DNA of 62,944 nucleotides, filler included, from Hyphochytrium catenoides (taxonomy: Eukaryota; Protista; Hyphochytriomycota): assembly GCA_900088475.1 (NCBI GenBank). It is 5 parts of 5 records of this genome, joined end to end, with 100 filler letters (N's around TTAATTAATTAA, not from the genome) between each part and the next. Parts side by side here need not be neighbours in the genome. Positions count along the whole stretch, not along the records: positions 1 to 19,039 come from FLMG01004302.1; 4 more parts are not named here. One strand, 5' to 3'. The notes under the pieces are model-generated. The model was given only the letters and a program-made list of their open reading frames with translations, searched no databases and had not been told where the DNA came from. Shown here piece by piece: positions 1 to 19,039 of this stretch. Position 1 is the stretch's first letter. Every line of letters starts with the position of its first letter. A program made the translations under genes and the position numbers.

Positions 1-2164
1 TAGCGCAACCAAGAGAGCACGACTCTCTCACTGGCACACCAATTGCATAACTTTGATATGACGAAACTCATGTGCAACAGCTGGTGGCTTGCGCCGGACT
101 CCAGCTCCTCAAAGCTCCGAAGAACAGTGAACAGCTATCTTCATCCAGCTCCCAAGGGAGCTCCAACAATGCCCAGGAGCTGACCTTCACGGCCTGGCAC
201 TCTCTGCCATCGCGTCCGGGGAATTTCCCCAAGTCAATCGTCCGACGGCGCCCCAGGTTGCCCCAGCGCGGCGCGGAGACGCTCGATCTCGCAATTCTTG
301 ATTGTGTTCTGAGGCTGTTGCGGCACGGCGGGCGGGCGAGCGACAGCAGAGTTTTGAGATCTTCACATGGTGCACTTTGTCCGCCACCAGTCAATAGATT
401 TCCAACGGTTACAAGGGCGAAAGATACGAAATATTACAAGTGTTAGATATATGCCCATAATATATTTCACTTTGACGGTAGAAGCGTATCTTTCAAAGTA
501 CATCGTTTGACACACCTTTTGACGGTACAACCATCAACGTGTACAGTATATACCTTACGTGCTCCTGAGACAACCATTCGTAGTGTATCATTGGGATGGG
601 TGGTGGTGGGATGGCAGGATGAAGGAGCTGGCGCTTTCCCGAAAGAGGAAGGAGGGAAGGCAGCAAGAAGATCCTCAGTGTCAGTCCGCCAGCAGCAGGT
701 ATCCAAGCATTGGAAGCCAGCAGCTCTTCTGCAGCTTGTTGTTGAGAGAACTGAACGACTGGCTGGCAGCAGCTGGTAACGAGCGGCAAGAAGAGCCAAG
801 CGACACAAGACACAAGTCTATTAGTCTTTCCTTGCCTCGGATGGGAAGAGTCCAGGCAGTGGAGACGGAGAGTCCATAGTTCCTTAGAAGATACAGTAGT
901 AATAAACACGGACTAATCTTAGATCCCATTCCGACAGGTTCTGATGTAAAATGTACAGTAGTAGTAGTTCTTATTTGCACGACGCTTCGTAGGTAGTAGT
1001 TATTCAAAAAAGCCAAGAGAGGATCATGACGGGATCAAAGGCACTTCGAACCTATTTTTTTCTTGCTGCACGACTGAGCTCAACTTCATAAGCAGTAGTA
1101 CTAGCCTATGATGCTTGCTGGACAGAAAAGAAGGGTCTTGAGCAAGCCGATCATCACCAACAATCGGGGGCAAGATCATACGCAAAGACTAGGGCTTCTC
1201 TGTCCGTCTGGACTACTCTACAACGTTTGAAGTCCTTAGTAGTGGCTATGGACGTGCGCATTTTACTTCTATTGGTCTTCGCTTTTATTATCTTGCCGTG
1301 ATTCTTCCTTGTTGACTATGATAAAGTAATGAACGGATTGACAGACAATCATTAACAAGCAGCAGCACATCCTCCCAAGGCTCTTCATGCTTCGATTCTT
1401 GATCTTGCTTAGAGACCTTCCAAGTCGCCTTTTCAAAAGGTTTCCATCGCGGGTACCCTTGCAGTCAATCGAGCCCTTTGGTCGTCAGCGAACCGGCAAG
1501 CAAAGAGAAACCCAGTCGAGGAATCAGGTCCACTGACGCTATGAAGCTTAAGTATCAGACAATCGTGGGCCCTTTAAGCACAAAATAAGTTGAGAGAGTC
1601 AAACAGAGAGGAAGGTGATGGAAGACATCCACATGGAAGGCCCCATCGAACCAAAGTGGAAGAAGAAGTTTATCTATGCAGGACGAAGAACAGCAGACAG
1701 AGTAGGAAGGAGGAGGTAGATAGATATCGGAGTTGAAACGAGAGAGGCAAAGTAGGAAAACGAAGAACAAGGAACCTCATAGCAGGAGAGAGGAGTAGCA
1801 GGAGGGTGATAAAGGAAAAATGAGGGAAGAAGCTGTCCATCATCATCGTCGTCGAGGACCGACGAAGTGAGAAATCGATCTTAACGTCCGTTACAAAGGT
1901 TCAAGATCTGACTGACCCACTCCCAAAGAAAGATTCGTTAAGTGAAATGTTTCACAGAGTTGAGAAGCGAGCTGATGGACTTACTGCCTTGTTATTTGTT
2001 TCTTTCGCGTTAAGCGGAATGTTTCTGTAAGACGTTATTTTTGGAGACAGACGCAACAAGGGACGTGAAGCCAGGCTGACTGCAGGCAACGAGAGAGAGA
2101 GAGGAAGAGACTGAGATGATGAGGGAAGGACAAAGAGAGAGAGCAGGAAAGAGAGAGAGAGAAA

Positions 2165-2222
<58 letters not shown>

Positions 2223-2841
2223 AGAGACTAAGCGGCGTGATTATAACTTATGAGAAAGTCAGAGAAACCTACAAGAGACCTGAGAGAGGCAGTTGCATCC
2301 TCTACTTGGCCCGTGCCCTTGCCCTCCCCCCATAAAGAGGGAGAGACTTATTAGAGATAAATGCAGACAGTGAGAGAGACCATGGAATGAGACAGGAGGT
2401 GGCGACATTAGGTACACGAATAGAAGCGACAAGCATCACTTGACACCTCGAGTGTTGAGAGATGACCAAGATGAAGTTGAAGAGCCCTAGAGGCGAAGAG
2501 GAAATAAGCGGAAGGAAGTGAGCGGGGAGAGGTGCCGAATCTCTTTCGCGTCCTCAAGATTCAGTGTCCACTCCAGAGAGAACGCAGGTGGCAAATCTCT
2601 GCAGATTCGTCTTGAACAGCAAAAGAGACTTCTACTCCTCTAGGAAAGAGTCGGGAACAAGATAGAAGAGATTAGAGAGAGAGTCTTTGAGGTTGGGCTG
2701 TACTTCGAAAGCTACATCTTTCAAGAAGCAAAGCAGCTAGGAGATAAAGCGAATGGGAAGAGCAGCAAAGTTCTACAAGCGAAAGGAGGCTAAGGGCTTT
2801 GTCTAGGACACAAGCTGTCAGAGGGGAACTAAAGCACAGGC

Positions 2842-3621
2842 ATGACACTAGAAAAAGGAGCCGAGAAAGGACTGTCGCACTATGAGCCTAGTCCTCTTCG
2901 GCTTATCCGACTCCGAACCCGAGATAAAGGAGGAGAAGTCTTAGCCTACTGTCTCTGTGATGGTGTCTTCGTCCTTGTCTCTCCCCTGTGCGCCAAACTC
3001 TTCCAGGTGCCGGATCCGCTGATGCTCGTGGGAAGGAGCCTTGAAGATTTTATGAGCCACAATCTTTTCTCCAGAGCTCTAGAAAGTCTGCAGATGGAGA
3101 TGGGTATCAAGTTTGAAGCCCCGGTGACAGGACGCATGCTTTACCTAGAGAACGGAGATATTTATTTGACAACGCGGCTGCAGCGCTGCCTAGAGCATCT
3201 TGCAATAAGAGCTTGGGGCTTCGCACGACAGAAGGGGCAGACAGAAGACGGTGGCTTCACTAGCTTAAGCTTCGCTAGGAGGGAGGATCACGTGATGGAA
3301 GACGGAGACTGTTTGCCCTCTGCCTCTCTCCTAGGTCTATCTTTGGATGAGGAAGGAGAGAATCTGCAGTTCAGGGGCGGAGCGGGCGAGAGCAACGAGT
3401 CTAAAAGCTCAGTATTAACCTGGAGAACGAAAGGGACAGGTACCTTAGGGAAGGAGGATTGTGTGCAAGAGGCAGAGTTCCCTGCGCCTCTCTCTCTCTT
3501 AAAAATGGAAGAGAGGAAGAAAGAGAGAAAGCTAAGCAGGCAAGAGTCGTCGTTATCAGACTATGCGTTCCAGCCCGATTGGGCCTCGCCACAAAGCTTA
3601 AGTCAAGAAAGCCTATTCTAG
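2842..3621 (+). CDS. hypothetical protein, possible degenerate PAS-like segment
   Basis: 259-codon ATG..TAG ORF in non-repetitive sequence. VLVSPLCAKLFQVPDPLMLVGRSLEDFM resembles a PAS-fold N-terminal half (weak). The same frame upstream is broken by 4 TAA/TAG codons. Confidence 0.45.
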   Translation: MTLEKGAEKGLSHYEPSPLRLIRLRTRDKGGEVLAYCLCDGVFVLVSPLCAKLFQVPDPLMLVGRSLEDFMSHNLFSRALESLQMEMGIKFEAPVTGRMLYLENGDIYLTTRLQRCLEHLAIRAWGFARQKGQTEDGGFTSLSFARREDHVMEDGDCLPSASLLGLSLDEEGENLQFRGGAGESNESKSSVLTWRTKGTGTLGKEDCVQEAEFPAPLSLLKMEERKKERKLSRQESSLSDYAFQPDWASPQSLSQESLF

Positions 3622-3829
3622 CGTCAGTCTCTCTCCTACTGCTGTGAATATGGGTTTGCCTTTCATCTTTGCACTGCTACTAGCGAAAGAAGGAGAACAC
3701 GAGAGCAAAAGGGTATCGAAGCGACCTAAAAGAGTACTTTGAACGGTCGTCCAACTATAAGAAGTGGATCTACCATAGGAGGTGGGAAGGAGAGGCAATT
3801 AAGAAGAAGTAGGAGTCGGGTTCTGGTTT

Positions 3830-6019
3830 CTAGATGAGATCAAAGTTGTGCGTCTCCGTTCCTGTCTGATGGTCAGCAGCCTGAGGTCGGGCCTCATACA
3901 CAGCCTCGACTATACCATGACGAAACTGCAGGGAGGGGAGAGAGAACGAGAGCGCCACACAAGAGGGAGAGAGAGAGAAAACGGACAAAAAGTGAGCAAA
4001 AACAACCGTAATAAGGCTGAGAGGGTGAGGAAGTAGCGAGCGGAGGGGAGAAAAGAAGGCGCAGTCCAGTTACCTGGAGTCCGTCTCCTTTAAAGCCAAT
4101 ATAATGAACCTTGGTGCTGTCCGCGCCGTAGTTCTCGGGGATATAAATAGTCACAGAAGTCACATTATGGAACTTGGCTAATCTGATGCGCAAAAGGAGG
4201 ACATATACGGATGTGTTTAGTGGAGTATGGGATGCGACGCGGGCAGAGCATCTTACAGAGACCGTGGCAGAGGATTTGAGGAGCTACAGTTTAAGGATAG
4301 GACATGGCTCCGTTGCAAGCAGCGGAATGAAGAGTATCAGTCACGGAGAGGACGAGCAGGCGGCGTACTTGAGTGGATAGTCTATCTCACTGTTGAAGTC
4401 TTCTGTCAGTTCCAAGGTCTGCGTTGGAACTAGGTCCTCCGCGTGGCTGAATTTGTCCCCAAGCAGAGGAGAAGGAGTGAAGGAATGAAGAATAAGCGGA
4501 CAGGTCGATAAATGAGGGCCTAGCAGCATCTGCTCCCCTCTTTCTCGCTCCCTCGTTTGGTGCCTGTATGATCTCTCCTTACATCGTTTGGTGCCTGTGT
4601 ATGATCTCTCCTTATATCACTCTGACGTCTTACTAAACCGCTACCATCTGTGTTGCCTCTCCCTAGCGACCTTTCTTTGCCTCGGCTTCCGTCTCGCTCT
4701 TCCCTTCATTTTTCCTTTACTCCGTCACACATCAAACTCGCTAAAGCTGTACCTGAAGTCAACATCCTCTCTGTTGACAAAGCTTTAGGGAGAAAGAGCC
4801 ACCAGCCGTTAATTAGGCACGTGGTAGGTAGATGAGAAAGGAGAGAGAGAGAAAGCGAGACTGAATGGGGCAAGCTACGAAACCTGAACCAAGCGAATGC
4901 CTAGAAAGAGTATTCGAGGCGGGGCGACACATAACGACAGGGCAGAATAAGGCTCCAGCCGAGGTGATGGAAGCGGAACGAGGGGAGAGAGAGAGAGAAA
5001 AAGAGAGAGACACCTCAAGAGAACAGGGAGAAGGGAATACCTACAGTTTGGCTACTTTCGGATGCTTTCCTTCCCCTCCGCCAGAGATGCAGATCGATTT
5101 CACTTTTACGGCCTCAGTGAAGCTATACGGACCAAAGAGAAGTCAGCGATCAGGGGATAAGGCGGATGTGACGTATCAGCAGGAGGACTTTAGGGGCAAA
5201 GAGAATCAAAAGTACCCAGGCATAGAGATAGAGAGACAGAGAAGGGAAGAGTAAGATGGAGGATACTGATTGACAAAACGGAGAGAGAACCGATGGTACA
5301 AGGACAATAGCAGGCGTAGAGGCCGCATATAGGGACCATTTCAAAGAAATATAGCAGGCGTAAGCGAGACAGGGAGAGAGAGAGAGAGGGAAGAAGTCAA
5401 GGCAGTGAAGACGGAGAGAGCTTGGCTTACGGTACGTATATTATGAGCTCTGGATCATCATCGTTGCTCTCTAAAAAAGGCTCTTCCTCTCTCTTTTGAT
5501 GATAAGGCTTGAAGCAGTTCTTTCCGCTACCGACCACGCGCTCACTGCAGCGCGAGTTAGAACTTAGCGCGAGAGGCAGTGTATATTGGAGTAACAGAAA
5601 TGAAGGTGAGAGAGAGAGAGAGAAGAGAGAGAGAGAGGAGAGAGAGAGGAGAACGGAGAGAGAAGGACGTCGGAATTATAAGAGAGCTCGTAAGGAAGAG
5701 GCCACACCAAGAGAGAGAGAGAGAGAGAAATGCGCGAGGGACGAGCCAGTATGCAGGAGAGGGACCACTCTGACATAGCATTTGTGGGATAACGAGCAGC
5801 TTTCTCTCTCTCTCCTTACTTGAGCGTCCTGATATGGTCGTGGTTCACATAGCGCCATAGAGACTGGCCCTCGGGATCCTCAGCATCATGACTGCCGACC
5901 AGACAGAGGACCGGGAGAGGTACCACAGATGCAAGATAGAAAGAAAAGGTTAGTGGTCGGGACTAAAAGAGGTGTAGAGGTGCCAAGAGAGAGAGAGTTA
6001 GATAGAAAGAGACAGAGAG

Positions 6020-6085
<66 letters not shown>

Positions 6086-6533
6086 GAGAACACAGAGAGA
6101 GAGAGAGGAGACTAAGAGAGAGAGAGAGAAAGCAGAGAAAGTGACAGCGACCAAGAGATTAAAGGAGGTGCCTGAGCGACTAAAGCGAAGGACGAGAGTC
6201 TAGGAGAATAGCAAGCAACGGCTTGAGAGGAGCGTCCGGTGGCTTAAAGAGCAGAGAGGAGACGATACAGCTAAGGGAAGAAAGGATAGAGAAGGAAGAG
6301 AAAGAGGAGAACTAGGAACGGCAATGGAAGTGAATCGGGAGAGGGTGAGAAAGAGAGAAGAGGGAGGGACAGACAGAGAGAGAGAGAGAGAGAGAGAGGG
6401 ACAGACAGAGAGAGAGAGCGAGAAAGAGAGACAGAGAGAGAGAGAGAGAGCCTCTCAGTGACCTATGGTCATGGCTGTGGTCATGGTCGTGGCCGCCGTG
6501 GTGATGATGATCCTCCCTACATTGCCGCGACAT
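3830..6533 (-). CDS. PITHD1: PITH domain-containing protein 1, 8 exons
   Basis: Phase-consistent GT-AG exons 6533-6463, 5891-5820, 5544-5431, 5122-5045, 4782-4753, 4446-4369, 4182-4074, 3925-3830. Protein: His-rich start (MSRQCREDHHHHGGHDHDHSH), LESNDDDPELIIYVPFTEAVKVKSICI, LFVNREDVDFS, AKFHNVTSVTIYIPENYGADSTKVHYIGFKG, VEAVYEARPQAADH. TAG stop. Confidence 0.95.
4553..4616. repeat. tandem duplication, 2 x ~32 nt, in a PITHD1 intron
   Basis: tcgtttggtgcctgt(gt)atgatctctccttaYa occurs twice head-to-tail. Confidence 0.9.
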
Positions 6534-6736
6534 CGGAGCCTTCACTTTCCTTCAAACGCTATTGTTGCCCAAGCTGCGTGTCTCTGTTGTTGCGCTGTTC
6601 GGCTAATGAACCAGCAGCGGCAGAACATTTCCAAGCGGTGCAAGACTGGAACAGGTTCAATGCGGGAGAGAGAGAGAGGTTGCAAGAAAGAATGTTTCAC
6701 CCCACACCGGTGAGGGAAGCAGCGCCCACGCGCGAG

Positions 6737-6797
<61 letters not shown>

Positions 6798-7101
6798 GAG
6801 AGAGAGAAAGAGAGAAACAAAGAGAGAGCGAGAGAGCGAGAGAGAGAGTTTTTAGAGACTGCTCGTAGGTGCGAGGGGCGCTCACTCCATGGAAGGAGAG
6901 GAAGAGAGCAGGAAAAGAGAGCTACTAACCAACTAGATACAGAAAACAGGTTTTGAGCAGGAATATGATGCAAGACAGAGCAAAAGCAGAGAGAGACAGA
7001 GGAGCCCAAGAGATATCGAAGCGGAGGAGAAATGGGTGATCTTGAAGATCCACTAGGATCATACTTAAAAAATTCTAGATATAAGCTTCATATAATGAAT
7101 A

Positions 7102-8646
7102 TTACTGCTTGGACGTGTGACTCTCCGAAATATCGCGTTCTTGATGATCAGAATCCTCATCCTCTTCTCCCAGATCAACCGTCGTCTCTCTCTTCTTCTC
7201 TCCCTCGTCGTCTTGATAACCTCTCTTCTCCTCTGCTCGGTGCCCATAATCCTCTCTCTCTCTCTTATCCTCAGGCCTCTCTTTCCTCTCTCTCATCTCC
7301 TCTCTCTCTTTAGCTCTCTCTTTCCTCTCCTCTCTCCCTTTCCCGGGCTGGTGTTGCTGCCAAGCGCTATAATACATCTGCCACCAGAGGTACCACTGCC
7401 ACCACAGCCACTCGCTCTGCTGCTGCAGAGAAGGAGAGAGAGAAACAGAGAGAGACACGTTTCCTAGAATCTCTTTCTCATAGTACGAGCGGAAGTAGGG
7501 AAAGAGGTCGTCCATCGCCATATTTTCTTTCTCCTCTCTCTCCTTTTCTTGGTGGCGAAGGCTCTCTTTCTCCAAGAAGGCGTGAGAATAAGGAAAGAGA
7601 TGATCCTCCATTGCCTCTCTCTCTTTCTCTCCTCGGCGAAGCTTCTCTTTGTGCCGTCGCAACTCCTCCCTTGTCGGAGAGAAGGATGAAAGATCCTTGC
7701 CCTGCCACAGAGCTGGAGAAGGAGAGGCGTGACAGCAATGAGAGGTAATAGGATGAGAATAGGCCACGGGAGGTGCGTAGTGAGGGCTGTCTCTCTCTCG
7801 TGTGGGGCTGTACAATGGGAAAGATCTAGGCTCCTGAGGTGACTGGAACAAAGAAGGCGAGAAAGAAGGTTCCGTGGGATCTCTTCTTTCCCCCAGATCA
7901 GCAACCCTTCGCTTTCCCTCCCGGCGACGTATCCTAGTTGGAGTCATGACTGTCTCTCTATGTCTCTCTCTCTCTCTTTCTTTGCTGCCTCTTCTCAAGG
8001 CTGGAGACAAGCTTTGCGCGGTTCTTTGTTCCTCTCGTCGTGCCTCACGCATGTCTTCTCGGCTTGGGAGAAATGACTTTTCTGGTGCAAGAAAGAGAGA
8101 AGAATATCTTTGCTGGGAGCTGTCTCTCTCTCCATCCTCTGAATCGCCTCTCTCTCTCTCTGGAGTGTGAGGTTCACTAAGAAAGCTGCTCAGTTCTGGT
8201 CTGTCGCGATCCCAAGCGAAGTAGTAAGGAATCTCGTAGTCAGGCAATGGCGTTCTCTTCCCGGCATAGCCAAGAGAGCCTCTCTTCCACTCTCTTCTCG
8301 CCTCTCTTCTCCTTGAGGTTGACGTGTCTAGGGGCACTTCCTCTCTGAAAGAGAGAGATGAAGGATGGGCAGGAAGGGGAGAGAGAGGAGGGGAGACAGA
8401 GAGTGTTTCCATGGAGCTATGCAGTCCTTCTCTCTCTTCAAGGGGAGATCCTACGGTGGCAGCTCGCATTTGGGACGCAGGAGAGAGAGATAATCTACTC
8501 TCCAGGTTTCTTCTCCCTCGGATCTCTCCAGCACTCTTTCTCTTTATCCCTTCTAGATTGCTCATCCGCAAGGAAGGATATCCTTGTTGATAAGAGAACG
8601 GGGCCCGCGCGGCCGCCGCCTCCATCTCTGGTGCCCCAGCCACCAT
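7102..8646 (-). CDS. hypothetical low-complexity (S/P/E/R-rich) protein; upstream exons near 9370-9940 possible
   Basis: 514-codon ORF from ATG at 8646. Contains an internal repeat MEDHLFPY..LEKE / MDDLFPY..YEKE and a W/Q/Y motif. No family recognised. Confidence 0.65.
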   Translation of the reverse strand: MVAGAPEMEAAAARAPFSYQQGYPSLRMSNLEGIKRKSAGEIRGRRNLESRLSLSPASQMRAATVGSPLEEREGLHSSMETLSVSPPLSPLPAHPSSLSFREEVPLDTSTSRRREARREWKRGSLGYAGKRTPLPDYEIPYYFAWDRDRPELSSFLSEPHTPERERGDSEDGERDSSQQRYSSLFLAPEKSFLPSREDMREARREEQRTAQSLSPALRRGSKERERERHRETVMTPTRIRRREGKRRVADLGERRDPTEPSFSPSLFQSPQEPRSFPLYSPTRERDSPHYAPPVAYSHPITSHCCHASPSPALWQGKDLSSFSPTREELRRHKEKLRRGEKEREAMEDHLFPYSHAFLEKESLRHQEKEREEKENMAMDDLFPYFRSYYEKEILGNVSLSVSLSPSLQQQSEWLWWQWYLWWQMYYSAWQQHQPGKGREERKERAKEREEMRERKERPEDKREREDYGHRAEEKRGYQDDEGEKKRETTVDLGEEDEDSDHQERDISESHTSKQ

Positions 8647-8686
8647 CCTTCACGTGACGGGGACGATGCACAATAAAGAAGACGAC

Positions 8687-8861
8687 GATGAAGAGAGAAG
8701 AGAGACGGAGAAGATTGAAGAGATAACCAGAGGATGGAGGCGAGATGAGAGAGAAGAGAGACGGAGAAGACTGAAGAGATAACTAGAGGATGGAGGCGAG
8801 ATGAAAGAGAAGAGAGACCGAGAAGACTTAAGAGATAACCAGAGGATGGAGGCGGGATGAA
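8687..8861. repeat. minisatellite, 3 x ~56 nt
   Basis: Unit approximately gatgaagagagaagagagacggagaagaYtgaagagataaccagaggatggaggcga. Confidence 0.9.
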
Positions 8862-9661
8862 ATGCCTTAGGTCCTCTAACAAGGAAGCGCGGCGGCCTGC
8901 ACGGCTGGCCTATAGAAGCAGAAGAGCGAGAGAGGGGGAGAGAGGGAGAGCGAGAGAAAAAAGATACCCTTTGTTAGGCGAGCAGGTCGACGCTAGAAGA
9001 GCTGTAACTGAAGGGGAGAAGGACCTGTCTCATGCCCCAGCTTACTTCCTTCCAGCATTGCCTGTCTCTTCCCCGTCTGCGAATCATCGCTGCAGAGGCT
9101 CCTTCGGTCTAGCTAACCCTCTTCCCAAAACCTTCCTTGTAACTCTCTCCTGGCTCTCATTTCTCTCTCATTCGCCCTTTCTCTCTCTCTCATTCTCTCA
9201 GCATCTCTCATCTCTCTTTCTCTTGTCTCTCCATCGCTCTTTCTCTCTCTCTCTCCCTCTGTCTCTCTCTCTCCCCCTCCCTCTGTTCCCTCCTTTGTCT
9301 CTCACTTCCCTTCCCTTCCCTTGTCTTGGACATGCTGCGGGAATCTGGTTGGGGGTTTCAGATCATACTTGATTCAGGATATCCTGACACGTTATCCTTA
9401 ATCTATCCTGCGAAGGAGTGTAGCATTCAGAACATATGCAGGTTCTTATGGTGGTAAAGACTTAGAGTCATCCCCCTGGAGATGTTGGATAAGAAGCTCA
9501 AGTTGTCTGTTTCTTTTGAGAGCAAGCCTCTGAGGCCCACCAAGACAGAGAGAGGGAGACGGGGTTAGAGAGAGAGAGAGAGAAAGAGAGAAAGAGAGAG
9601 AGAGATACATAGAGACAGAGAGAGATAGAGAGAGATAGAGAGAGAAAGAGAGGGAGAGAGG

Positions 9662-9694
<33 letters not shown>

Positions 9695-10018
9695 AGAGGA
9701 GAGAGAGAGGGAGAGAGAGAGAGAAACAGAAGTGCCAAGCTGAAGAGGTAAGAGGATCCAGGGGTGTCGGTTGACAGGTGCAAAAATCAAGCTATGGCAG
9801 AGACTCTCCCTCCTCTGCTCAATGTCACTAGGTCGCTGCTTAGACAACAGGAAGAGCTCGAGACCTTGCGGGTCGTTGTCCAGGATGGCAGGACAACGTC
9901 CATCGTTGGACGCTCCAGGGAGAGCAATTATGTCTCCCATTGTCCTATCTTCCGCCTGTTCCTCAATTGATCAAGATAAGAAGGTAGGAAGAAAGGTTGG
10001 GGAGAGAGAGACGAGCTC

Positions 10019-13000
10019 ATGGACGATAGCGCCTATCTCCGCCCGAGCCCTTTCCTGCGCCTAACAATGCGCAGTCGAGCCAGTGATCGAGAACCAGGGC
10101 AGCTGGCACCTCCCTCTCCCACAGTTCGAGTCTCCTTCTCTCTCAACGCGGGTGAGGGACGGTCGACCAGCCCTCAGAGAGGAGGAAGACACAGAAGAAA
10201 GAGACCTCGGTTGAGCTTTATCGCTTCTATCTTCTTCGTTCTTCTCTTCTTTTCCTTTGCTATCTATTGCTTCTTAGCCTTGAGGCTGCACTTTGACGGT
10301 TCTCCGGAGAGAAACCAAGAGAGGCTCTCGACCTTTCTCCTCTCCTCATCACAAGATGAGGTTGATCAGCCATCTTCAGCGGTACCCTCTCCTCCTCTCT
10401 CTCCCGAAGAGCTAGAGGAGCTCCTTGCTAGCGATGACATAGTTATTTTGGCAGAAGGGAGCGGGGAGAAAGAGAAAGAGCGAGAGAGAGGGGAACCGGA
10501 AGTGGAAGGCAAACATGTAGGAGGAGAGAGAGAGGAGGATGAAGAGAGAGCGGAAGAGTGTAAGACCTGTCTCTTGCTCTTTCAAGAGTTGAACGGCCTC
10601 GGTCTGGACTACACGGTGATAGATCTTCAACTCTTCGAGCACGGCGACTTCCTCAGGCAGCACTTCTCTATAAGAGATAGACACGCTCCTGACTCCACGG
10701 GCACTGAAAGCGCGGACGCTGTGAGGATAGAGGAAGAGGAGAATGCCTTACCTCAGCAGAAGGGCAACTTGCTGTCTGAACCTAAGGAGCTGCCGGTGAC
10801 CTTCTATAAAGGAACACTTCGTGGCGGGAGAGGAGCGCTTCTCGCTCTCCTGAAGTTTCAGCGTGCACTGTCCGGCACAAGCAAGAATAGTAAAAATGAA
10901 GCAAAGCAGGGAGATATGCCTCTTCACCTTCCTCTGCGGTTAGAGGGCGTCCGCCGCATTGTCAACAGTGACAAAAAGCAAGATAATCAGCTACGTCTCA
11001 GCTCCATCGCGGCGAGGAAGGTGAAAAGTCTAGGATGGGAGGATCGCCTCTTTTGGCTGACACGACTGCAGATGCGGCGCCATCTATCGCTTACAGATGT
11101 TCACTCCTTCGCCAGGGGATGGAAACCGACACTTTCAGACATCTCCGAGATCCCTGTCACGGATCCGGATAATGATATTCAATGCATTGCCTGGCGCCAG
11201 CTGGAAGGGTGCAAAGGTGGAGAAAGGTTGCCAGAGCTAGATAGTCCATGCAGTGCCTCCATTGGGCAGGACTCTGCGGGCTTCTGTGAGTTTAGACATC
11301 ACAGGACGGGGCAAAGCTTCAAATATAGAGAGACAGCGTGTGATCATCCTCATCCTTTCACTTGCAATGACGCCCTCGAGATCTTCCTATACAAGCACAG
11401 GGAGGAGCAATTCCGGAGATTTGCCCCGCCTTTCCCCAGCGTTCCTCTCTCTCTGCCGCCAGAAGAGAGGGCCTCCACAGAAAGAGAGAGGCGAGGGATC
11501 GTGATGGCAACTCATGATGGCGTCATTTTCGATACTTACGTGGCCATTCGCACTCTTCGCTGGCTGAACTGCACTCTCCCTGTGGAGCTTTGGCACGGGG
11601 AGCATGAGATCAGGCCGCCAAGCAGACGTCTCCTGAATATTCTAAGGGATAAGCACGGCGTCACTTTGAGGCCCTTTGATGCTGGTAGGTAAGAGAGAGA
11701 GAGAGAAAAAGAAAAAGAGAGAGAGAGAGAGAGGAGAGAAGAGAAGAGAGAGGTTGCTGACTGTGATGGTGGTGAACTCTATTGCTTCTCTCTTTGTGTG
11801 TGCCGGTGACCTCTTTGTACTTCCACTACTGCCTCTACGCAATTTCTAGCGCCGGTGGCGGTGATATATTTTGATCTGGGTCTCCTTACTCCTGGGAGCT
11901 TGGTGTCTACTCTTACCCCCTCCTGGTCACTCCTTTAGGTTGCCTCTTGCTAGCTCTTTGCTTTTGCTTCTACACTCTTCCTCTCTCGTTCCTTGCCATA
12001 GAAGCTCAGACTTCCCTTATCGTGCACCAGTTTCTGCAGGCGTGGAAGGCTTCATGATCAAGATCTGGGGCATCTATCACTCTTCCTTCCGCGAGGTGCT
12101 CTTCCTCGATAACGATAATATCCCTATCCGAGATCCCTCCTATCTCTTTCTCTCCCCTCACTATCAGAAGACTGGAGCTATCTTCTGGCCTGACTTTTGG
12201 CACCCAAATAACACCATTTTTATCAACAATGTTAGGGGAAACCTTGTCCAGGAGCTCCTAGGCGTGCCTTTCTCCTTCATGCACGAGGGAGAAAGCGCAC
12301 AAATACTCATTGATAGAGAGAGACATTGGCGCTCTCTCCAGACGCTTCTCTTCTACTCTCTTCACACAGAGCCATGGAGCAAGCCTAAGCTATTACATGG
12401 GGATAAGGATCTCTTCCGCTTGGCGTGGATGAGGAACAACGCTTCCTTCTTCCTCATTCCCCGCCCGCCATCTGTTGCTGGCAGTATGACACTCGGGTTT
12501 GCCCAAAAGGAAAGAGACAAGGATCCTGTTTCTTACCTTTCGTTCCAATCTCCCCCTCGAGGTAGAGTCCCGGCTCCAACTCCGGATCCCCATCAGTTCT
12601 GCGGGACCACAATGGTCCAGCACGATCCAGAAGGAGCAGTACTCTTTCTCCATAGAAATCAAGCAAAATTCAGCTCCGCAGCCGGAAGGAAGAGACTCTG
12701 GAGAGAGATTCAGGAGTTTGTCCCACCCTCTGGGTCAAATTTTTCTTCAGCTCTCTCTTTTGTGGGAATGATACCAGTACCTGGCCTGCCGGAGACGGAG
12801 GGTGTCTGGCTGGGCACTGCCGAAGACAGAAAAACCATGCAGAACGCTGTTTCTTGTTTTCTTCATCAGACACATGGAAGGCTTGTCTTCAGTTCTTCTT
12901 CTTCCTCTTCCTCTTCCTCTCCCCCTTCCACTGCCACCCCCACCTCCGTCTCTTCTCCCGAGTCCAGGAAAGAGATAGGAACTGAGGGCGATCACTTTGA

Positions 13001-14528
13001 TAAACCACCACTGTCTCTGCTTTATATGAATCTCTCGTACTCTTCTTCTCTCTCGTTGGGCCAGTTCTACGACTCTTTCTCGCAGCTTCAAATCTGGCTT
13101 CAGAAGCTGGAGCAACAATGCCATTCTTTCCTCTTTGAGGGCGAGTCTGTTCGCTTTTCTTCCTCCACTATTGTCTCTGAGGGCTGGCGACGGAAAGATG
13201 TTGGAGGTGAAGGAGAGAAAGACAAGAAAGCCGAGGGCAGGCGGCCCATGGGTACCTCTCTCCTTGCCAGCATTTTTAACCTTAAGCCCATGGTAGCCAC
13301 AGCGAACACACCGGGTTCCTGCCTCTTGAGGGAGAAAGAGACAGGGAAACAGTTAGAGGCCATGAAGGTAGGGAAGGCTCATCGCATCTTCTCCTGCAAT
13401 CTTGAGCCTGTTCTCTCTCATGGGAAAGCCTTCTTCTCCTCGCTGCCGCTTTCCGCTTTGCCTTCCGTCGGAAGGAAGGTGGAGAAGAGTGGCAATGGAA
13501 TTATTTTTCTGCTTCTTCCTTGGGACACCGTGACGGCAGCTTTGCGCCAGTCTTTGAAGGTTCTTGGCAGGACGAACGGTGAGACAGTGGAGATCTGGAT
13601 AGAAGAAGGAGAGAAAGAAAGAACCCTGGAGAGAATGAGTGACCTTCTCTCTCCTCATCCAGGATGGAGATTGAAGACTTATCGCTGTCGGAGGTTCTCT
13701 GACGCATCATCTCTCTCCCTGCCAACGTGTGAGAAGCACTCTGTCCTGGGGAGCGTCCTCTCGGAGACCTCTCTAGAAAAGGTTCTTGTTCTTCTCTCTC
13801 CTCAATTGCTTCTCAAAGAGTACGACAGCTCTCTCTTTTCTCATCCTGCGTTTGACAAGGAAGGCGCGCTCTTCTGGCCCGAGTATATAGGACTTCCTCT
13901 CCCTCTCTCACAAAAGAAGGGGTGGAGAGAGAGTAACGAAGAGGAAGAGGAAGAGAGATTGCCTGTCGGGTATGGCGGGCTCTATGTGGCGCCAGATGAT
14001 CTACTCTGGCCTCTAATGGGCAGCAAGGGACGAAGAGACGAAGAGAGAGGAGGAGACGGTGACCATCCTCTTCCCTCTCTCTCCCAACAGCCCATCGTGT
14101 TAGATGTATTTTTTATAAACACACGGAAGAGAGAGAGACTGATCTCTGCTTTGCTCCATGTGGAAGGAGAGCTTCGAAAGAATGGTCTCGCCTTGGCTCG
14201 GCTTCTCTTTGGAGAGAACCATCTGCTTCGATTGTTAGCCTTAGTATTGGATGAGCACCTGGCAAGCGTAGGAGAGAATCCTTCTTTACTTCTCTCCTCC
14301 AGTCATTCTTCCATCTTCTCTAAGAACAAGAAGAGTGAGTGTGGCGTCGCCCAAGACCTTCGAGCTGGGAAAGAGAAGCTCTCCTTTTCTGTCATCCGGC
14401 CTCTCTCTTTCTTTCCTGCTGAACGATGGTGGCAAGATCTTGATGGCAGTCTCTCTTCTGTCTCTCCTCCTGCTGGAGAGCGGCCCACTGTCACCGTCCA
14501 GAACGGATGTGTCTCGTTCAGACCATGA
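10019..14528 (+). CDS. type II membrane GT71 (MNN2/MNN5-like) alpha-mannosyltransferase fused to a glutaredoxin-like domain and a degenerate second GT71 domain
   Basis: Exons 10019-11684 and 12040-14528 (phase-1 GT-AG intron), about 1380 aa. N-terminal TM helix; CIAWRQ..GFCE Cys module; RGIVM..IRTLRWLNCTLPVELWH; VLFLDNDNIP; TGAIFWPDFW; ESAQILIDR; HGDKDLFRLAW; FCGTTMVQHDPEGAVLFLHRN. Confidence 0.93.
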
Positions 14529-14861
14529 TAGAGAAACTAAGAAAGAGAGACATGGTAAACTAACAGAAGAAGGGTCTGGACCGCGGCTAACGCTACTTAA
14601 GCTTTATGTTTATAGAAAAGCGGGTGTACAGAGTATAGAGAGGAGAGGAGAAAGAGATCCCTACGAGAGAGAGGACATAGAGGCGAGTAGAGACAGGCCT
14701 TCAGAAGATGGACTCTAGAGGTATCTGTCCTTTCTTGCAATGACGCAGCGATAGACCAAGCCCATGCGAATGCTGGACAACTAAGTGATGCTCTTGTCGG
14801 GACGAGAAGAAAGAGAAAAGATAAGAGAGAGAGAGAGAGAGAGAAAGTGCGAGACAGAGAG

Positions 14862-14894
<33 letters not shown>

Positions 14895-15230
14895 NNNNNN
14901 NNNNNNNNNNNNNNNNNNNNNNNNNNNNNNNNNNNNNNNNNNNNNNNNNNNNNNGAACTGAAAAGCCAGAAGGAAAGAGAGAGAGACGAAAGAGAAGAGG
15001 AGGAAGGGTTATTCCCGCTCACTTATATTTATCTTGCATACCCGGGATCATAGAGATAGAGCCCGCTCACTATAAACGCCTCTTTTGCAGTAAGAACATT
15101 GTTTGGCACGGACTACTGCGCCCACCGCGGCTGGCAAGGGAGCAGAGAGAGAGAGAGAGAAACACACCTACAGAGAGAGAGAGACACACAGACAACAGAA
15201 AGCAGTGAGAGCAGAGAGAGAAAAGAAAGG

Positions 15231-18200
15231 CTAAGCAGCTGTGGCAGAGTTACCTCCGCAGCAGAAGATAGTGCGGAACGAGCGATAAGCGCGTGTGCAG
15301 AGAGGAGCTCTCTCCTCAGTCTTCTTCTCTCCTTCTCTGATGTCCGAGTCTTGCTCTCGCTCTGTCTGCTGAAAGGCAAGCGCTATCTCCTCCCTTGTCT
15401 CATCCTCAGTCTCCGTCTCCACCTCTAGCTGTTGCTTCTCCCCTTCCAGCTGTTCCAACCTCGTCATTAGCTCCTCCAGCCGTCTCTTCAGTTCGTCATT
15501 CTCTCTCTTTAGATCGTGCACAGGAGAATGAGCCGGAGAGGGAGAGAGAGAGCGAGAAGAGCGACAAAGAACGACTCCTACTTTGACATAGAGGAGAGCG
15601 ATCTTCCATCTCAGCTGGGCGCGCAGAGAACAGATAGACGCGCCGCGCATGGCTCTCCCAGTCTCACTGGTTCTGAAGCTTTGGCACGCAGTTCTCTCTC
15701 TCTTGTCCCGATTTATCATGCTCCCGTCTCTCTTTCTCATGCCTGGTTCCTCTCGTGGGGTCATACAAGAGAGAGAAGAGGGAGAAGGAGATGGTGAGGC
15801 GGAGCTGATGGTGCGCTGTCTCTGACGGTAAACTCTTTCCACCATCTTCCGCTTTCTCTCCTGCTCCTCCTCCTCCTCTCTGTCGTTCTCTCTCTCGGTC
15901 TGGAGGCTCTCCAGAAGCTCCTCGACCACCTGGACGCTTTGCGGTTTTTCTGCCCTTGCTCGCCTTCTTGCCTCAGCAAGGAGACGAAGGAGGCGATAAG
16001 AGAAAGAGAAAGAGAGAAATGCGCGTCTCCAGAGGCATCTTCTCTGCTGGTAGAGCAGCAGCCTGTCTACCCATTGCAGTGAGCTACACAGGAGAGAGGG
16101 CGAGAGAAGAGTGTCTGAAGAGCAAGGAGAGAGAAGAGCCGGAGAAGAGTCCGACTTTGCTATGAGGATGTGGTGGAAGTGCCTTGTCTCTATGGGACAG
16201 AGTCTGAACCGCTCCCTGCTGCTCTTACTCTCAGCCATCCGGCTCCATCTTCTTCGAATGTCTCTCTTTCTCTTTCTCTGACGGAGCTCCTTCTCTGCTG
16301 CACAGCGCCGCCAGAAGCTCTGGATTTGCATGGCTCTTCGGTTGCGCCTGCATTTCTGCAGCACGTCTACCCAGCCTCTATGTGCCACAATTTTTGCTAT
16401 CGCCACCTTCCAGAGCTTCAAAATGCGATAACGATGAATCTGAAGATTGACTCTCTGAAGCTCGGAGCGTATGCGGAGCCTTTCCATCTTCTGCAAAAAC
16501 TCTTCAATGCGTCCGACCCTGAAGAAGATCCTCGTGGATCCAAGCTGATAGCAAGTGCGGGGAAGAGAGAAGGCGGAGACAAGCGCTTCGACAAAGAGAC
16601 GGTCGCTCAGCTTGGATACACTTCGGGATACATCGCTTCCCGAGGGAGAGAGACAAGTCTCTCCTCTCGATCCCCTTTCTCTTGCCTCTTTATACATATC
16701 TCTCACTTCTTTGTATGGCAGTCGCGTGGGCAGGCCAACCTTCAGCACTTCACAAGCAGAGACGGTGCCAGACTGGCGGAGCTGCTGCGCCACATAGAGC
16801 CGGTCGAAGGCTCCGTATTCCATAGCTTTGTTAGGCTTAAAGCAACGAATATAATGTACGGAAGTGCTCTCAAGCTCTCCGATGAGCTCTGTCATTTGCT
16901 GCACGAAGAGAGCGGAGACGCTCTTGGAGAGAAGTGAGCTCTTCCGCTGCGCCAAGGTCTCCAGATAATCCGGAGGAAGAAGAGAGGAGACGATCCTGTC
17001 TGTGCTTCCAAGAAGAAGCTCTCCAATCTCGGGAGAGATGATGTTGCTGTTCTTATCGAGGAAGTTCTCCACGGTGTAGGTCACACAGCCAGCAAAATGC
17101 CTTACAATGAACTTCTCATGGACATCTCGAGGGTGCGGACGCGGAAGCAGATGCTTTCTTCTCGCATCGGAGAGAGAGAGAGACCCGCCGAGAGAAGATG
17201 AAGAGGAGCTAGAAGAAGAGAGAGAATGCACCCTATCGATGAACTTCTTGTCTGAGGGGTCAGGGCCGCGGGCAACACCGTCCAGAATGGCAAAGATCCC
17301 TCCTGGTCTTGAGGCAAAAAGCTCGATGAGCTCTGAATTATCTTCAAACGCGATAGGAACCGTCTGCAAGTTCTCTTCTCTATAGAGCGCCTGCTCCCTC
17401 TGGCAAATGGCGCGGACGAAGAGATTTTGCAAAGATTCATTGGCAAAGTTGATCAGCAGCTGCTCGAAGCCGTTCACGGCGAAGCTCTCGAAGCCAAAGA
17501 TGTCCAGGACGCCAATATAAGGAAGAGAGGCAGACGGACTCGTGCCAGACTGTGGCCAAAGGAAAGAGAAAGGGAGACAATAAAGAAGAGAGGAAAATGG
17601 GTTAGAATCATCTCTGTTACCTAGAGGCCTAGGCCTGGCGTTGTCTTGGTGTCCCTCTAACACTTTCTCTTTCTGTTCTTCTCTCTCTCTCGTTCTCTCT
17701 CTCTCTCTTTGGCATTCTCCTCTTCGTTGTTTCTTTAACTTCCCTGGCTCCTCTCTCCTCAGCCTTTCTATTCACTCTTCGAGGCTTGCTTTCACGGCCA
17801 TCGTCTACCATTCCTCCCCTGCCTCTCGGTCTGTCTCTCTCTCTTTCTGTCTATCTCTCTGTCTCTCTCCCTCTTCCTCTCTTACCTCCAGGCTCTCTGT
17901 TATCTGCTTCATGATCCAGCTGAAGAGTTCCCCATAGATGATCTTCGCAACTGAATCTCTCGCATAGATAGCGGTCTGTCTGTCTCTCTTCACCACGTAC
18001 TCACTGCCCCTCGAGCGGATTCTAGAGATCTTCTTCTCCAGCATCGCTCTCTCCAGCGCTCCCTCCTCCAGACCAAGACAGAGTGCTGCTCTTCTTAGCG
18101 CATCTCTTCCCTCCTCTTCTCCAACGACGGATGTGGTCCCTTGCTCTGTCTCTTCTTCACCAATCTCAATGTTCCCGAGATGCAGACATCCGCAGACGAC

Positions 18201-19039
18201 TCTGAAGATTTCTACTTGCGTCTCAGGAGATATCCCGATGGCTTTCAATGCGCGCCGCAGGGCAATGAATCGTTCGCTGTCTGCGCTGTCCGGGGAGAGA
18301 GCTTCGGGTTGGAGGTAAGCATAGGACCGAGACGGACACAGATCAAACTCAGCTCGCTCCGAAGGCTCCAGTCCCGCGAGCAACTAGTGAAAAAGGTGTA
18401 TGTTAGCCGAGAGACACGAGAGATAGGCGGTAAGCTGTGAAGGGTTAGAGGAAGAAAGGCATAAGATGATGGTTGGACGATAGAGAGATTAAGAGTATGA
18501 GGAGGAGACAAGAAGGACTGACTAGAGCAATTAAAGAGAAAGTAAAAGAGACGCAACGATCAAGAGACAGAGTAAGAGCTGAAGTAATAGCTTGAAAGAC
18601 AAGGGAGAGAAAGGAAGAGAGAGAGAGGGACGGAGTGAGCGAGAAAGAGAGAGAGAGAGAGAAGGAGTGAGCGAGAAAGAGAGAGAGAAGGAGAGAAAGA
18701 GAGAGAACTAAGGAGCAGTAAAAGCAGGGCGTAAGAAAGAAAAGGTGAGATAACAATGCAGAGAGAGAGAGAGAGGGAGAAGCCTCCTAGTGGCAGAGTA
18801 CCATGTAAAATATATGGAAGTTTCTCTCTCCTGCAGGACGGCTGACAAGCCTTGACTTCTCCAGTAAGTACGTGTCAATAGACGCACTCAGCAACTCAGG
18901 ACCGTCTCTGTCTTCTCGCTGCCCTCCCTTCCTCCCACCATCCGCCGCCCCAGACGCCGAGGGAGAAGAAGAGAGAGAGGACGAAAAGTGCAGGCGCATG
19001 TACTTTCCAAAGCGAGAGGAATTGTGGTTTCTCTGTGTC
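15231..19039 (-). CDS. myosin heavy chain (C-terminal part of motor, IQ, short coiled-coil tail), 5' truncated by scaffold end
   Basis: Exons 19039-18802, 18383-17886, 17549-15231. Motifs [10 protein letters not shown] (switch I), [25 protein letters not shown] (switch II), [27 protein letters not shown]. Confidence 0.95.

Follow-up and report, generated by a model that had tools for sequence, protein, structure and literature searches.

Among glutaredoxins (Grx) of the secretory pathway, yeast Grx6 and Grx7 are stand-alone proteins that face the lumen of the endoplasmic reticulum (ER) or the Golgi behind an N-terminal signal anchor, and they combine monothiol CSYS or CPYS active sites with normal contacts to glutathione (GSH). 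These contacts canonically comprise a basic residue before the first Cys, the Thr/Val of the TVP motif and the acidic pair that follows a GG motif. Mycoredoxin/NrdH-type and phage glutaredoxins are short redoxins of 70-115 amino acids (aa), free cytosolic or viral, some of which act independently of GSH. Disordered spacers are typical of the stems of Golgi glycosyltransferases, and we found no description of a glutaredoxin-glycosyltransferase fusion in the literature on glutaredoxin domains, glycosyltransferases and the Golgi. Here we analyze a GT71 glycosyltransferase gene of Hyphochytrium catenoides that lies in a 62,944-nt stretch of DNA (the window; assembly GCA_900088475.1, positions 1 to 19,039 being from record FLMG01004302.1) and for which an initial annotation had proposed a lumenal CxxC glutaredoxin domain fused to a Golgi-type mannosyltransferase. 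An architecture of transmembrane (TM) helix, long stem, six-Cys module and GT71 domain is firmly established for this gene. Its lumenal stem is ~280 aa longer than in related enzymes and contains the segment at issue (aa 128-284), which resembles a glutaredoxin split by two inserts and may derive from one.

The gene opens with a 557-codon open reading frame (ORF; 10019-11692, + strand) that starts at the first ATG after a stop codon, and an 885-codon ORF in another frame follows after a short gap. Because the PF11051 (Mannosyl_trans3) profile starts on the first ORF, where its N-terminal 40 positions are found, and the rest of it lies on the second, we read the two ORFs as exons of a single eukaryotic gene. 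The frame is preserved by two GT..AG joins (introns 11685-12039 and 11689-12001); the one connecting nt 11684 to nt 12040 was preferred because it removes 13 residues that are absent from all 70 homologs in the alignment, and the intron it defines has stops in all three frames. With this join, the predicted product is a type II membrane protein of 1384 aa in which an Arg-rich cytosolic tail, the TM helix, the long lumenal stem, the six-Cys module and a GT71 domain with one intron succeed one another. A type II signal anchor at aa 65-88 was indeed read from the translation, as the initial annotation had it, and the short basic tail, single N-terminal TM helix, stem and catalytic domain together correspond to the topology of type II Golgi/ER glycosyltransferases. 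According to the positive-inside rule, a basic tail remains in the cytosol and the C-terminus enters the lumen, and by applying this established rule we predict a lumenal orientation here. In the source run, 10069-11679 lies on one 1652-nt contig and variant contigs are absent, yet ~2-3% of sites are reported to be heterozygous genome-wide (PMC5795050); the variant-free tract may reflect loss of heterozygosity or a collapsed assembly.

The motifs on which the glutaredoxin proposal was built are present in the first ORF: ELLASDDIVILA begins at nt 10415, CKTC occupies nt 10559-10570 (aa 181-184), LPVTFYKGTLRGG occupies nt 10790-10828 and includes Pro259 and Gly269-270, and ALLALL ends near nt 10852. 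The segment divides into three pieces, A to C, separated by two inserts (Table 1), and its likeness to glutaredoxins in the alignments is as follows: First, when the intact segment was added to 120 glutaredoxins with MAFFT --add, the register proposed in the initial annotation was recovered unsupervised. Second, CKTC aligned on CPYC by hhalign, by a broad Grx hidden Markov model (HMM; see below) and by MAFFT, with the 35-aa insert separating it from the β1-like strand; helices and strands were placed solely by a low-confidence structure model (see below). Third, Pro259 and Gly269-Gly270 matched the conserved P and GG columns, spaced without gaps, by HMM, Smith-Waterman and MAFFT, in agreement with the earlier claim that the cis-Pro and the GG are retained. 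At last, the structural hallmarks of the fold are kept in the alignment, namely the hydrophobic strands, the Gly before β2, the Pro, the GG and an amphipathic last helix. The register of the segment on glutaredoxins is shown at the level of alignment, and we infer a thioredoxin (Trx) fold for its core.

All five sub-segments (the three pieces and the two inserts) are open only in the frame of the gene, with one to four stops in each of the other two frames, and no plausible GT..AG splice pair was found in the sequence around insert 1 or insert 2. Since the frame is uniquely open and a splice pair is lacking, nt 10415-10865 looks like continuous coding sequence; inserts in the form of introns were rejected on the same grounds. 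Piece B has a GC content of 0.74 at third codon positions (GC3) and an intact frame. Over insert 2, a match to a PHROGs family of unknown function (E 0.02-0.045) was judged to be a low-complexity match. Inserts of this kind have counterparts in the lineage. The catalytic domain of the same protein carries a 31-aa insert, and a monothiol (CPYT) glutaredoxin encoded elsewhere in the genome (L027:1333-2004, - strand, contig C3378; E 9e-22 to the Grx profile) has an ERERER-rich N-terminal region and an Arg/Glu-rich insert in the α2-β3 loop, shorter than insert 2. This shows that true glutaredoxin domains of this genome tolerate low-complexity inserts, and the two cases make insert-bearing domains plausible in the lineage. 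Pairwise BLASTP between the segment and the L027 protein gave an E of ~0.1.

In targeted comparisons the likeness stood only modestly above chance, by a borderline margin. The broad Grx HMM was built from 120 glutaredoxins of eukaryotic, bacterial, viral and own-genome origin, and an insert-free core of ~85 residues was obtained by deleting both inserts from the segment. With glutaredoxin as the prior hypothesis, the core scored 6.8 bits with this HMM (p 3e-4), a score reached by none of 5000 shuffles and by none of 2416 windows of real GT71 proteins that are not glutaredoxins; the intact 157-aa segment gave p 1.4e-3, piece B p 7e-4 (empirical 2e-4) and piece C, at profile positions 83-102, p 0.02-0.03. 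Across 792 six-frame ORF windows of the genome, the segment window ranked first at 5.1 bits. Smith-Waterman comparison of the core with the 120 glutaredoxins gave a best score of 72, against a max-over-database null of 38 +/- 5 (highest value 59), and the best alignment, to a Saprolegnia glutaredoxin, spans from helix0 at the N-terminus to α3. hhalign with a class I Grx alignment set CKTC on CPYC at P 0.007 (probability 5.5%). When piece B (39 aa) was compared with 18,950 NCBIfam models, the sole match was mycoredoxin TIGR02200 (E 0.24), in register (residues 3-26 on profile positions 10-33) and with 11.8 bits, the cut-off being 89.5. Feature searches of ESM-Atlas, whose scores serve as leads only, returned nothing except glutaredoxin clusters, including phage and giant-virus glutaredoxins, at 0.89 for the 172-aa stretch aa 123-294 and at up to 0.91 with β1 and insert 1 omitted. 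Profile, pairwise and language-model comparisons, which are in part interdependent, give moderate evidence for glutaredoxin and for no other family.

The enzyme downstream of the stem is a GT71 member, as had been proposed. PF11051 on exon 2 reached 97.8 bits against a cut-off of 22 and shows the family assignment (Mnn1-like and predicted to be DxD-dependent); the DxD is kept (LFLDNDN aligned with LFLDADN), as are FWPDFWHP and GDKDLFRLAW, ESGQ has become ESAQ, and 62 of the 79 catalytic-domain columns that are conserved at >=90% in homologs are retained. Its closest relatives are all from oomycetes, with 40-46% identity over the catalytic domain only and 50-58% over the catalytic core, in line with the placement among stramenopiles expected from the start. 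Mannose specificity is inferred by analogy to the fungal Mnn1-type members; no characterized oomycete-type GT71 enzyme was found in the literature searched. The genome comprises 61 Mb in 4759 records, with at least eight PF11051 paralogs among its genes. Exon 2 further encodes a degenerate second GT71-like remnant, in which SSLFSHPAFDKEGALFWPEY aligned against SYLFLSPHYQKTGAIFWPDF. Some oomycete homologs of 1150-1400 aa contain two modules, which points to an ancestral tandem-GT71 layout.

Directly upstream of the catalytic domain lies the six-Cys module, which is present before PF11051 as the initial annotation stated and which proved not to be a specific partner of the putative fusion: 92 of 114 stramenopile GT71 homologs (including proteins P0001-P0093) share it in the same place, usually ~100 residues from the N-terminus. 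The module has the consensus C.GWR.T..C...G.R.P..D..C......SGYCE......G......C......F.C. Own-genome paralogs (L002-L018) carry one to six tandem copies of it in their stems. Modeling with AlphaFold2 (AF2) and 56 sequences gave a confident β-sheet-plus-helix structure with a predicted local distance difference test score (pLDDT) of 84. Foldseek found no match to this model in the PDB, the module has no Pfam family, and the best ESM-Atlas match was the N-terminus of oomycete GT71 proteins (TM-score 0.76). The module is an ancestral, conserved accessory domain of stramenopile GT71s.

A number of results speak against a glutaredoxin origin of the segment. The stretch had been picked by eye for its glutaredoxin look, which is a selection bias, and per-window p values of 1e-3 to 1e-4 are for this reason suggestive and not decisive. 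The runner-up among the 792 ORF windows scored 4.2 bits against the 5.1 of the segment. When a dynamic program granted free long inserts to the nulls as well, the segment scored 24.0 bits (nulls 14.2 +/- 2.6; p 0.004), and of the 792 ORF windows one, unrelated, tied with it; the same test with a narrow profile of class I Grx was not significant (p 0.065). The ESM-Atlas scores of 0.89-0.91 fall in the range reached by 4-10% of shuffled proteins. Pfam returned no PF00462 match for the segment even at E 10, short of the family threshold and as anticipated from the proposal that the inserts hide the signal from routine searches; a whole-genome PF00462 scan recovered the true glutaredoxins of this organism and missed the locus. 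A PDB sequence search of the segment gave only an irrelevant 12-bit match, phmmer, run with the 172-aa stretch on 1.84 billion representative proteins, gave none, and a word-index search with aa 100-480 of exon 1 likewise returned no match. Furthermore, a protein search of the genome found no second copy of the glutaredoxin-like part, a metagenome scan found no relative of the stem, and the combined glutaredoxin-GT71 architecture that had been anticipated in relatives was seen in none, there being no Grx signal in or beside any of 114 GT71 homologs or 49 metagenomic GT71 loci (6-kb flanks). These searches thus yielded no paralog or ortholog of the segment that would attest to its conservation. 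The AlphaFold check suggested in the initial annotation did not come to its aid: the AF2 model, computed from the single sequence without an alignment, had a pLDDT of 38, which makes it untrustworthy and useless as evidence of a fold, and its helices lie at the expected places of α1, α2 and α3. Finally, the residues that would contact GSH are replaced in the alignment: Lys/Thr-Tyr before Cys181 has become Glu-Glu, Thr-Val-Pro has become Glu-Leu-Pro, and the Asp-Asp after the GG has become Arg-Gly-Ala. The active-site Cys is moreover immediately preceded by a 35-aa acidic insert, for which glutaredoxins offer to our knowledge no precedent. The proposed glutaredoxin domain, a plausible hypothesis that falls short of proof, has in its favor the register and the targeted p values, and against it that no comparison reached database-wide significance. 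Weighing both sides, we hold the chances to be even that the segment is truly derived from a glutaredoxin and has a Trx fold, and we divide them roughly equally between an active redoxin and a relic.

Among the other explanations, the one that survives best is a chance resemblance, by which the segment would be a lineage-specific, largely disordered stem spacer whose hydrophobic islands and CxxC happen to stand in a glutaredoxin-like order, with no Trx fold and no redox role. In its favor are the absence of a significant match in any all-family or all-protein search and of conservation in the genome, the metagenomes and the GT71 homologs, the outcome of the free-insert null with its unrelated tie, the low-confidence AF2 model and the missing GSH-contact residues, the overlap of the ESM-Atlas scores with shuffled proteins, and the choice of the stretch by eye. 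It accounts less well for three separate pieces that stand in the right order and register, the N-terminal helix included, or for the globular-type composition of pieces A to C inside a low-complexity stretch; several methods name one family only, and random ESM-Atlas hits should have given a random family, not the one predicted beforehand. We regard chance as a strong contender that stays somewhat short of an even prospect.

Alternatively, the segment could be the degenerate relic of a glutaredoxin gene, for example of a Grx6/7-like type II membrane glutaredoxin fused upstream of the GT71 part, now decayed to a spacer in which CKTC forms a structural disulfide or none. Such an origin would agree with the retention of the fold-hallmark positions (hydrophobic core, Gly, Pro and GG) together with the loss of the GSH-binding residues, and with two long inserts, one of them right at the active-site loop; the decayed second GT71 domain of the same gene demonstrates that domain decay does occur in this protein. 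Both Cys residues of the CxxC are retained, however, and piece B combines a high GC3 with an intact frame; we consider a relic rather unlikely. An artefact of the gene model, with part of nt 10415-10865 intronic or missing from the mature protein, is very improbable: insert 1 is GA-rich like the start of the real intron and no RNA runs were found for checking the exon-intron structure, but the sub-segments are open in the gene frame only, in contrast to the true intron with its stops in every frame, no convincing GT..AG pair of plausible length flanks either insert, and both inserts have lengths divisible by three and lie inside a single 557-codon ORF.

Returning to a glutaredoxin origin, the stem core of ~85 residues would derive from a glutaredoxin/thioredoxin-fold domain that was split by hydrophilic, lineage-specific loops, one of 35 and one of 40 aa, in the order N-terminal helix, β1, CKTC at the start of α1, β2, α2, a Pro in the cis-Pro column, β3-β4, GG and α3. 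Its CKTC dithiol, exposed to an oxidizing lumen, might act as a module for thiol-disulfide exchange or redox sensing, with the Cys-rich ectodomain in cis (the six-Cys module and the catalytic domain) or client proteins as its targets. Because the canonical glutathione-contact residues are replaced, classical GSH-dependent activity appears unlikely. If the segment folds, a GSH-independent dithiol redoxin or redox sensor, behaving in the style of NrdH or the a domain of PDI, is more likely than a classical glutaredoxin, and a decayed structural relic has about the same likelihood as such a redoxin or sensor. An active redox role of the segment is doubtful. The full proposal, a lumenal glycosyltransferase with its own Grx-derived, GSH-independent and insert-tolerant dithiol redoxin that would form or isomerize disulfides of its own ectodomain or switch the mannosyltransferase according to the lumenal redox state, we deem unlikely.

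If it were true, no earlier case would be known in which a Trx-fold redoxin is covalently coupled to a glycosyltransferase, and lumenal thiol chemistry and glycan synthesis would be linked in one polypeptide with the CxxC redoxin carried on a stalk. It would also mean that a Trx fold can tolerate long loop insertions of low complexity that make the domain invisible to Pfam, which would have practical weight for the annotation of insert-rich protist genomes. At present the locus is of value as a cheap and well-defined test case; it is a single orphan in one genome and not an established discovery.

Table 1 Features of the GT71 gene and its stem segment (nt positions in the window).
Feature	Position	Strand	Description
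Exon 1	10019-11684	+	aa 1-555 and first base of a split Gly codon; alternative donor 11688
Signal-anchor TM helix	10211-10282	+	aa 65-88; 24 hydrophobic residues after RGGRHRRKRPR; read from translation
Piece A	10400-10453	+	Helix-like ELEELLAS and hydrophobic strand DIVILA; aligned to the N-terminal helix and β1 of class I Grx (MAFFT --add; Smith-Waterman with Saprolegnia Grx)
Insert 1	10454-10558	+	35 aa, Glu/Lys/Arg/Gly-rich, GA-rich tract; between β1-like strand and CKTC
Piece B	10559-10666	+	CKTC and α1/β2/α2-like sequence
Insert 2	10667-10783	+	~40 aa, hydrophilic; at the position of the α2-β3 loop
Piece C	10784-10876	+	ELP (Pro259 on the cis-Pro column), VTFY, GG (aa 269-270), amphipathic helix ALLALLKFQRAL
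Linker	10877-11143	+	~90 aa, no recognizable family; in Pfam only sub-threshold PADRE, E 0.17
Six-Cys accessory module	11144-11428	+	Cys389, 398, 411, 423, 441, 449; β-sheet and C-terminal helix (AF2)
GT71 domain, first part	11486-11684	+	PF11051 profile positions 2-42 and onward; E 1e-3 alone
Intron	11685-12039	+	355 nt, GTAGGT...TTTCTGCAG; alternative 11689-12001
GT71 domain, main part	12040-12650	+	PF11051 E 9.2e-28; DxD, FWPDFWHP, GDKDLFRLAW; 31-aa lineage-specific insert
C-terminal extension of exon 2	12651-14528	+	Continuous ORF to stop codon; low complexity in places; predicted exon structure
Degenerate second GT71-like remnant	13767-13889	+	SPQ at the DxD position; BLASTP to first domain E 3e-4; PF11051 E 0.15, profile positions 91-132

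Environmental sequences cover another portion of the gene. Over 11850-12602, two soil metagenome runs (X4 and X5) contain identical 151-nt contigs and a third run (X6) contains contigs with two or three differences; soils are thus a habitat of the organism or of a strain very close to it. The identical contigs from the two soil metagenomes come from exon 2 and the intron only, so that the glutaredoxin-like part is uncovered and offers no variants. Also in the window, the region 5000-7000 is of low complexity and strongly purine-skewed (GC skew <=0.44, AT skew <=0.54), and its ORFs give spurious weak profile scores, the ORF near nt 5833 reaching 4.2 bits with the Grx HMM. In a large ORF on the minus strand (15231-17663), PF00063 (E 2.6e-67) marks a myosin motor domain, of which the C-terminal two thirds are encoded; class VI myosins are the closest solved structures, and this neighboring gene is unrelated to the GT71 gene. 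Elsewhere in the genome, a 448-aa protein (L020:397-1743, contig C1131) combines a PAPS/APS-reductase-like domain with a CKFC glutaredoxin domain at its C-terminus, in the layout of plant-type APS reductases, and its contig carries another GT71 paralog ~40 kb away.

Compared with the oomycete GT71 enzymes, the protein has a catalytic domain of 40-58% identity with the DxD and FWPDFWHP, a six-Cys module directly upstream of it and a type II anchor in common. It differs in that the six-Cys module starts at residue 386, against a median of 103 in the relatives, in that a Grx signal is seen in 0 of 114 relatives, and in the presence of the decayed second GT71-like region. Class I dithiol glutaredoxins (PF00462), such as the 114-aa CPYC protein of the same genome (L019) and the Saprolegnia glutaredoxin, are collinear with the segment through helix0, β1, CxxC, α1, β2, α2, Pro, β3/4, GG and α3 in the alignments. 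Unlike them, the segment has very low identity, no Pfam match, CKTC for CPYC, ELP for TVP, GGRGA for GGxDD, and the two inserts of 35 and 40 aa. Mycoredoxin/NrdH-type and phage glutaredoxins are the only families that the segment recalls (TIGR02200, and the phage and giant-virus clusters), in every case below threshold. The layout shared with Grx6 and Grx7 comprises a short cytosolic tail, a type II anchor, a linker and a lumen-facing domain of glutaredoxin type, here a candidate one. In contrast to those yeast proteins, this candidate has a dithiol CKTC without the GSH contacts and two long inserts, and it is followed by a glycosyltransferase.

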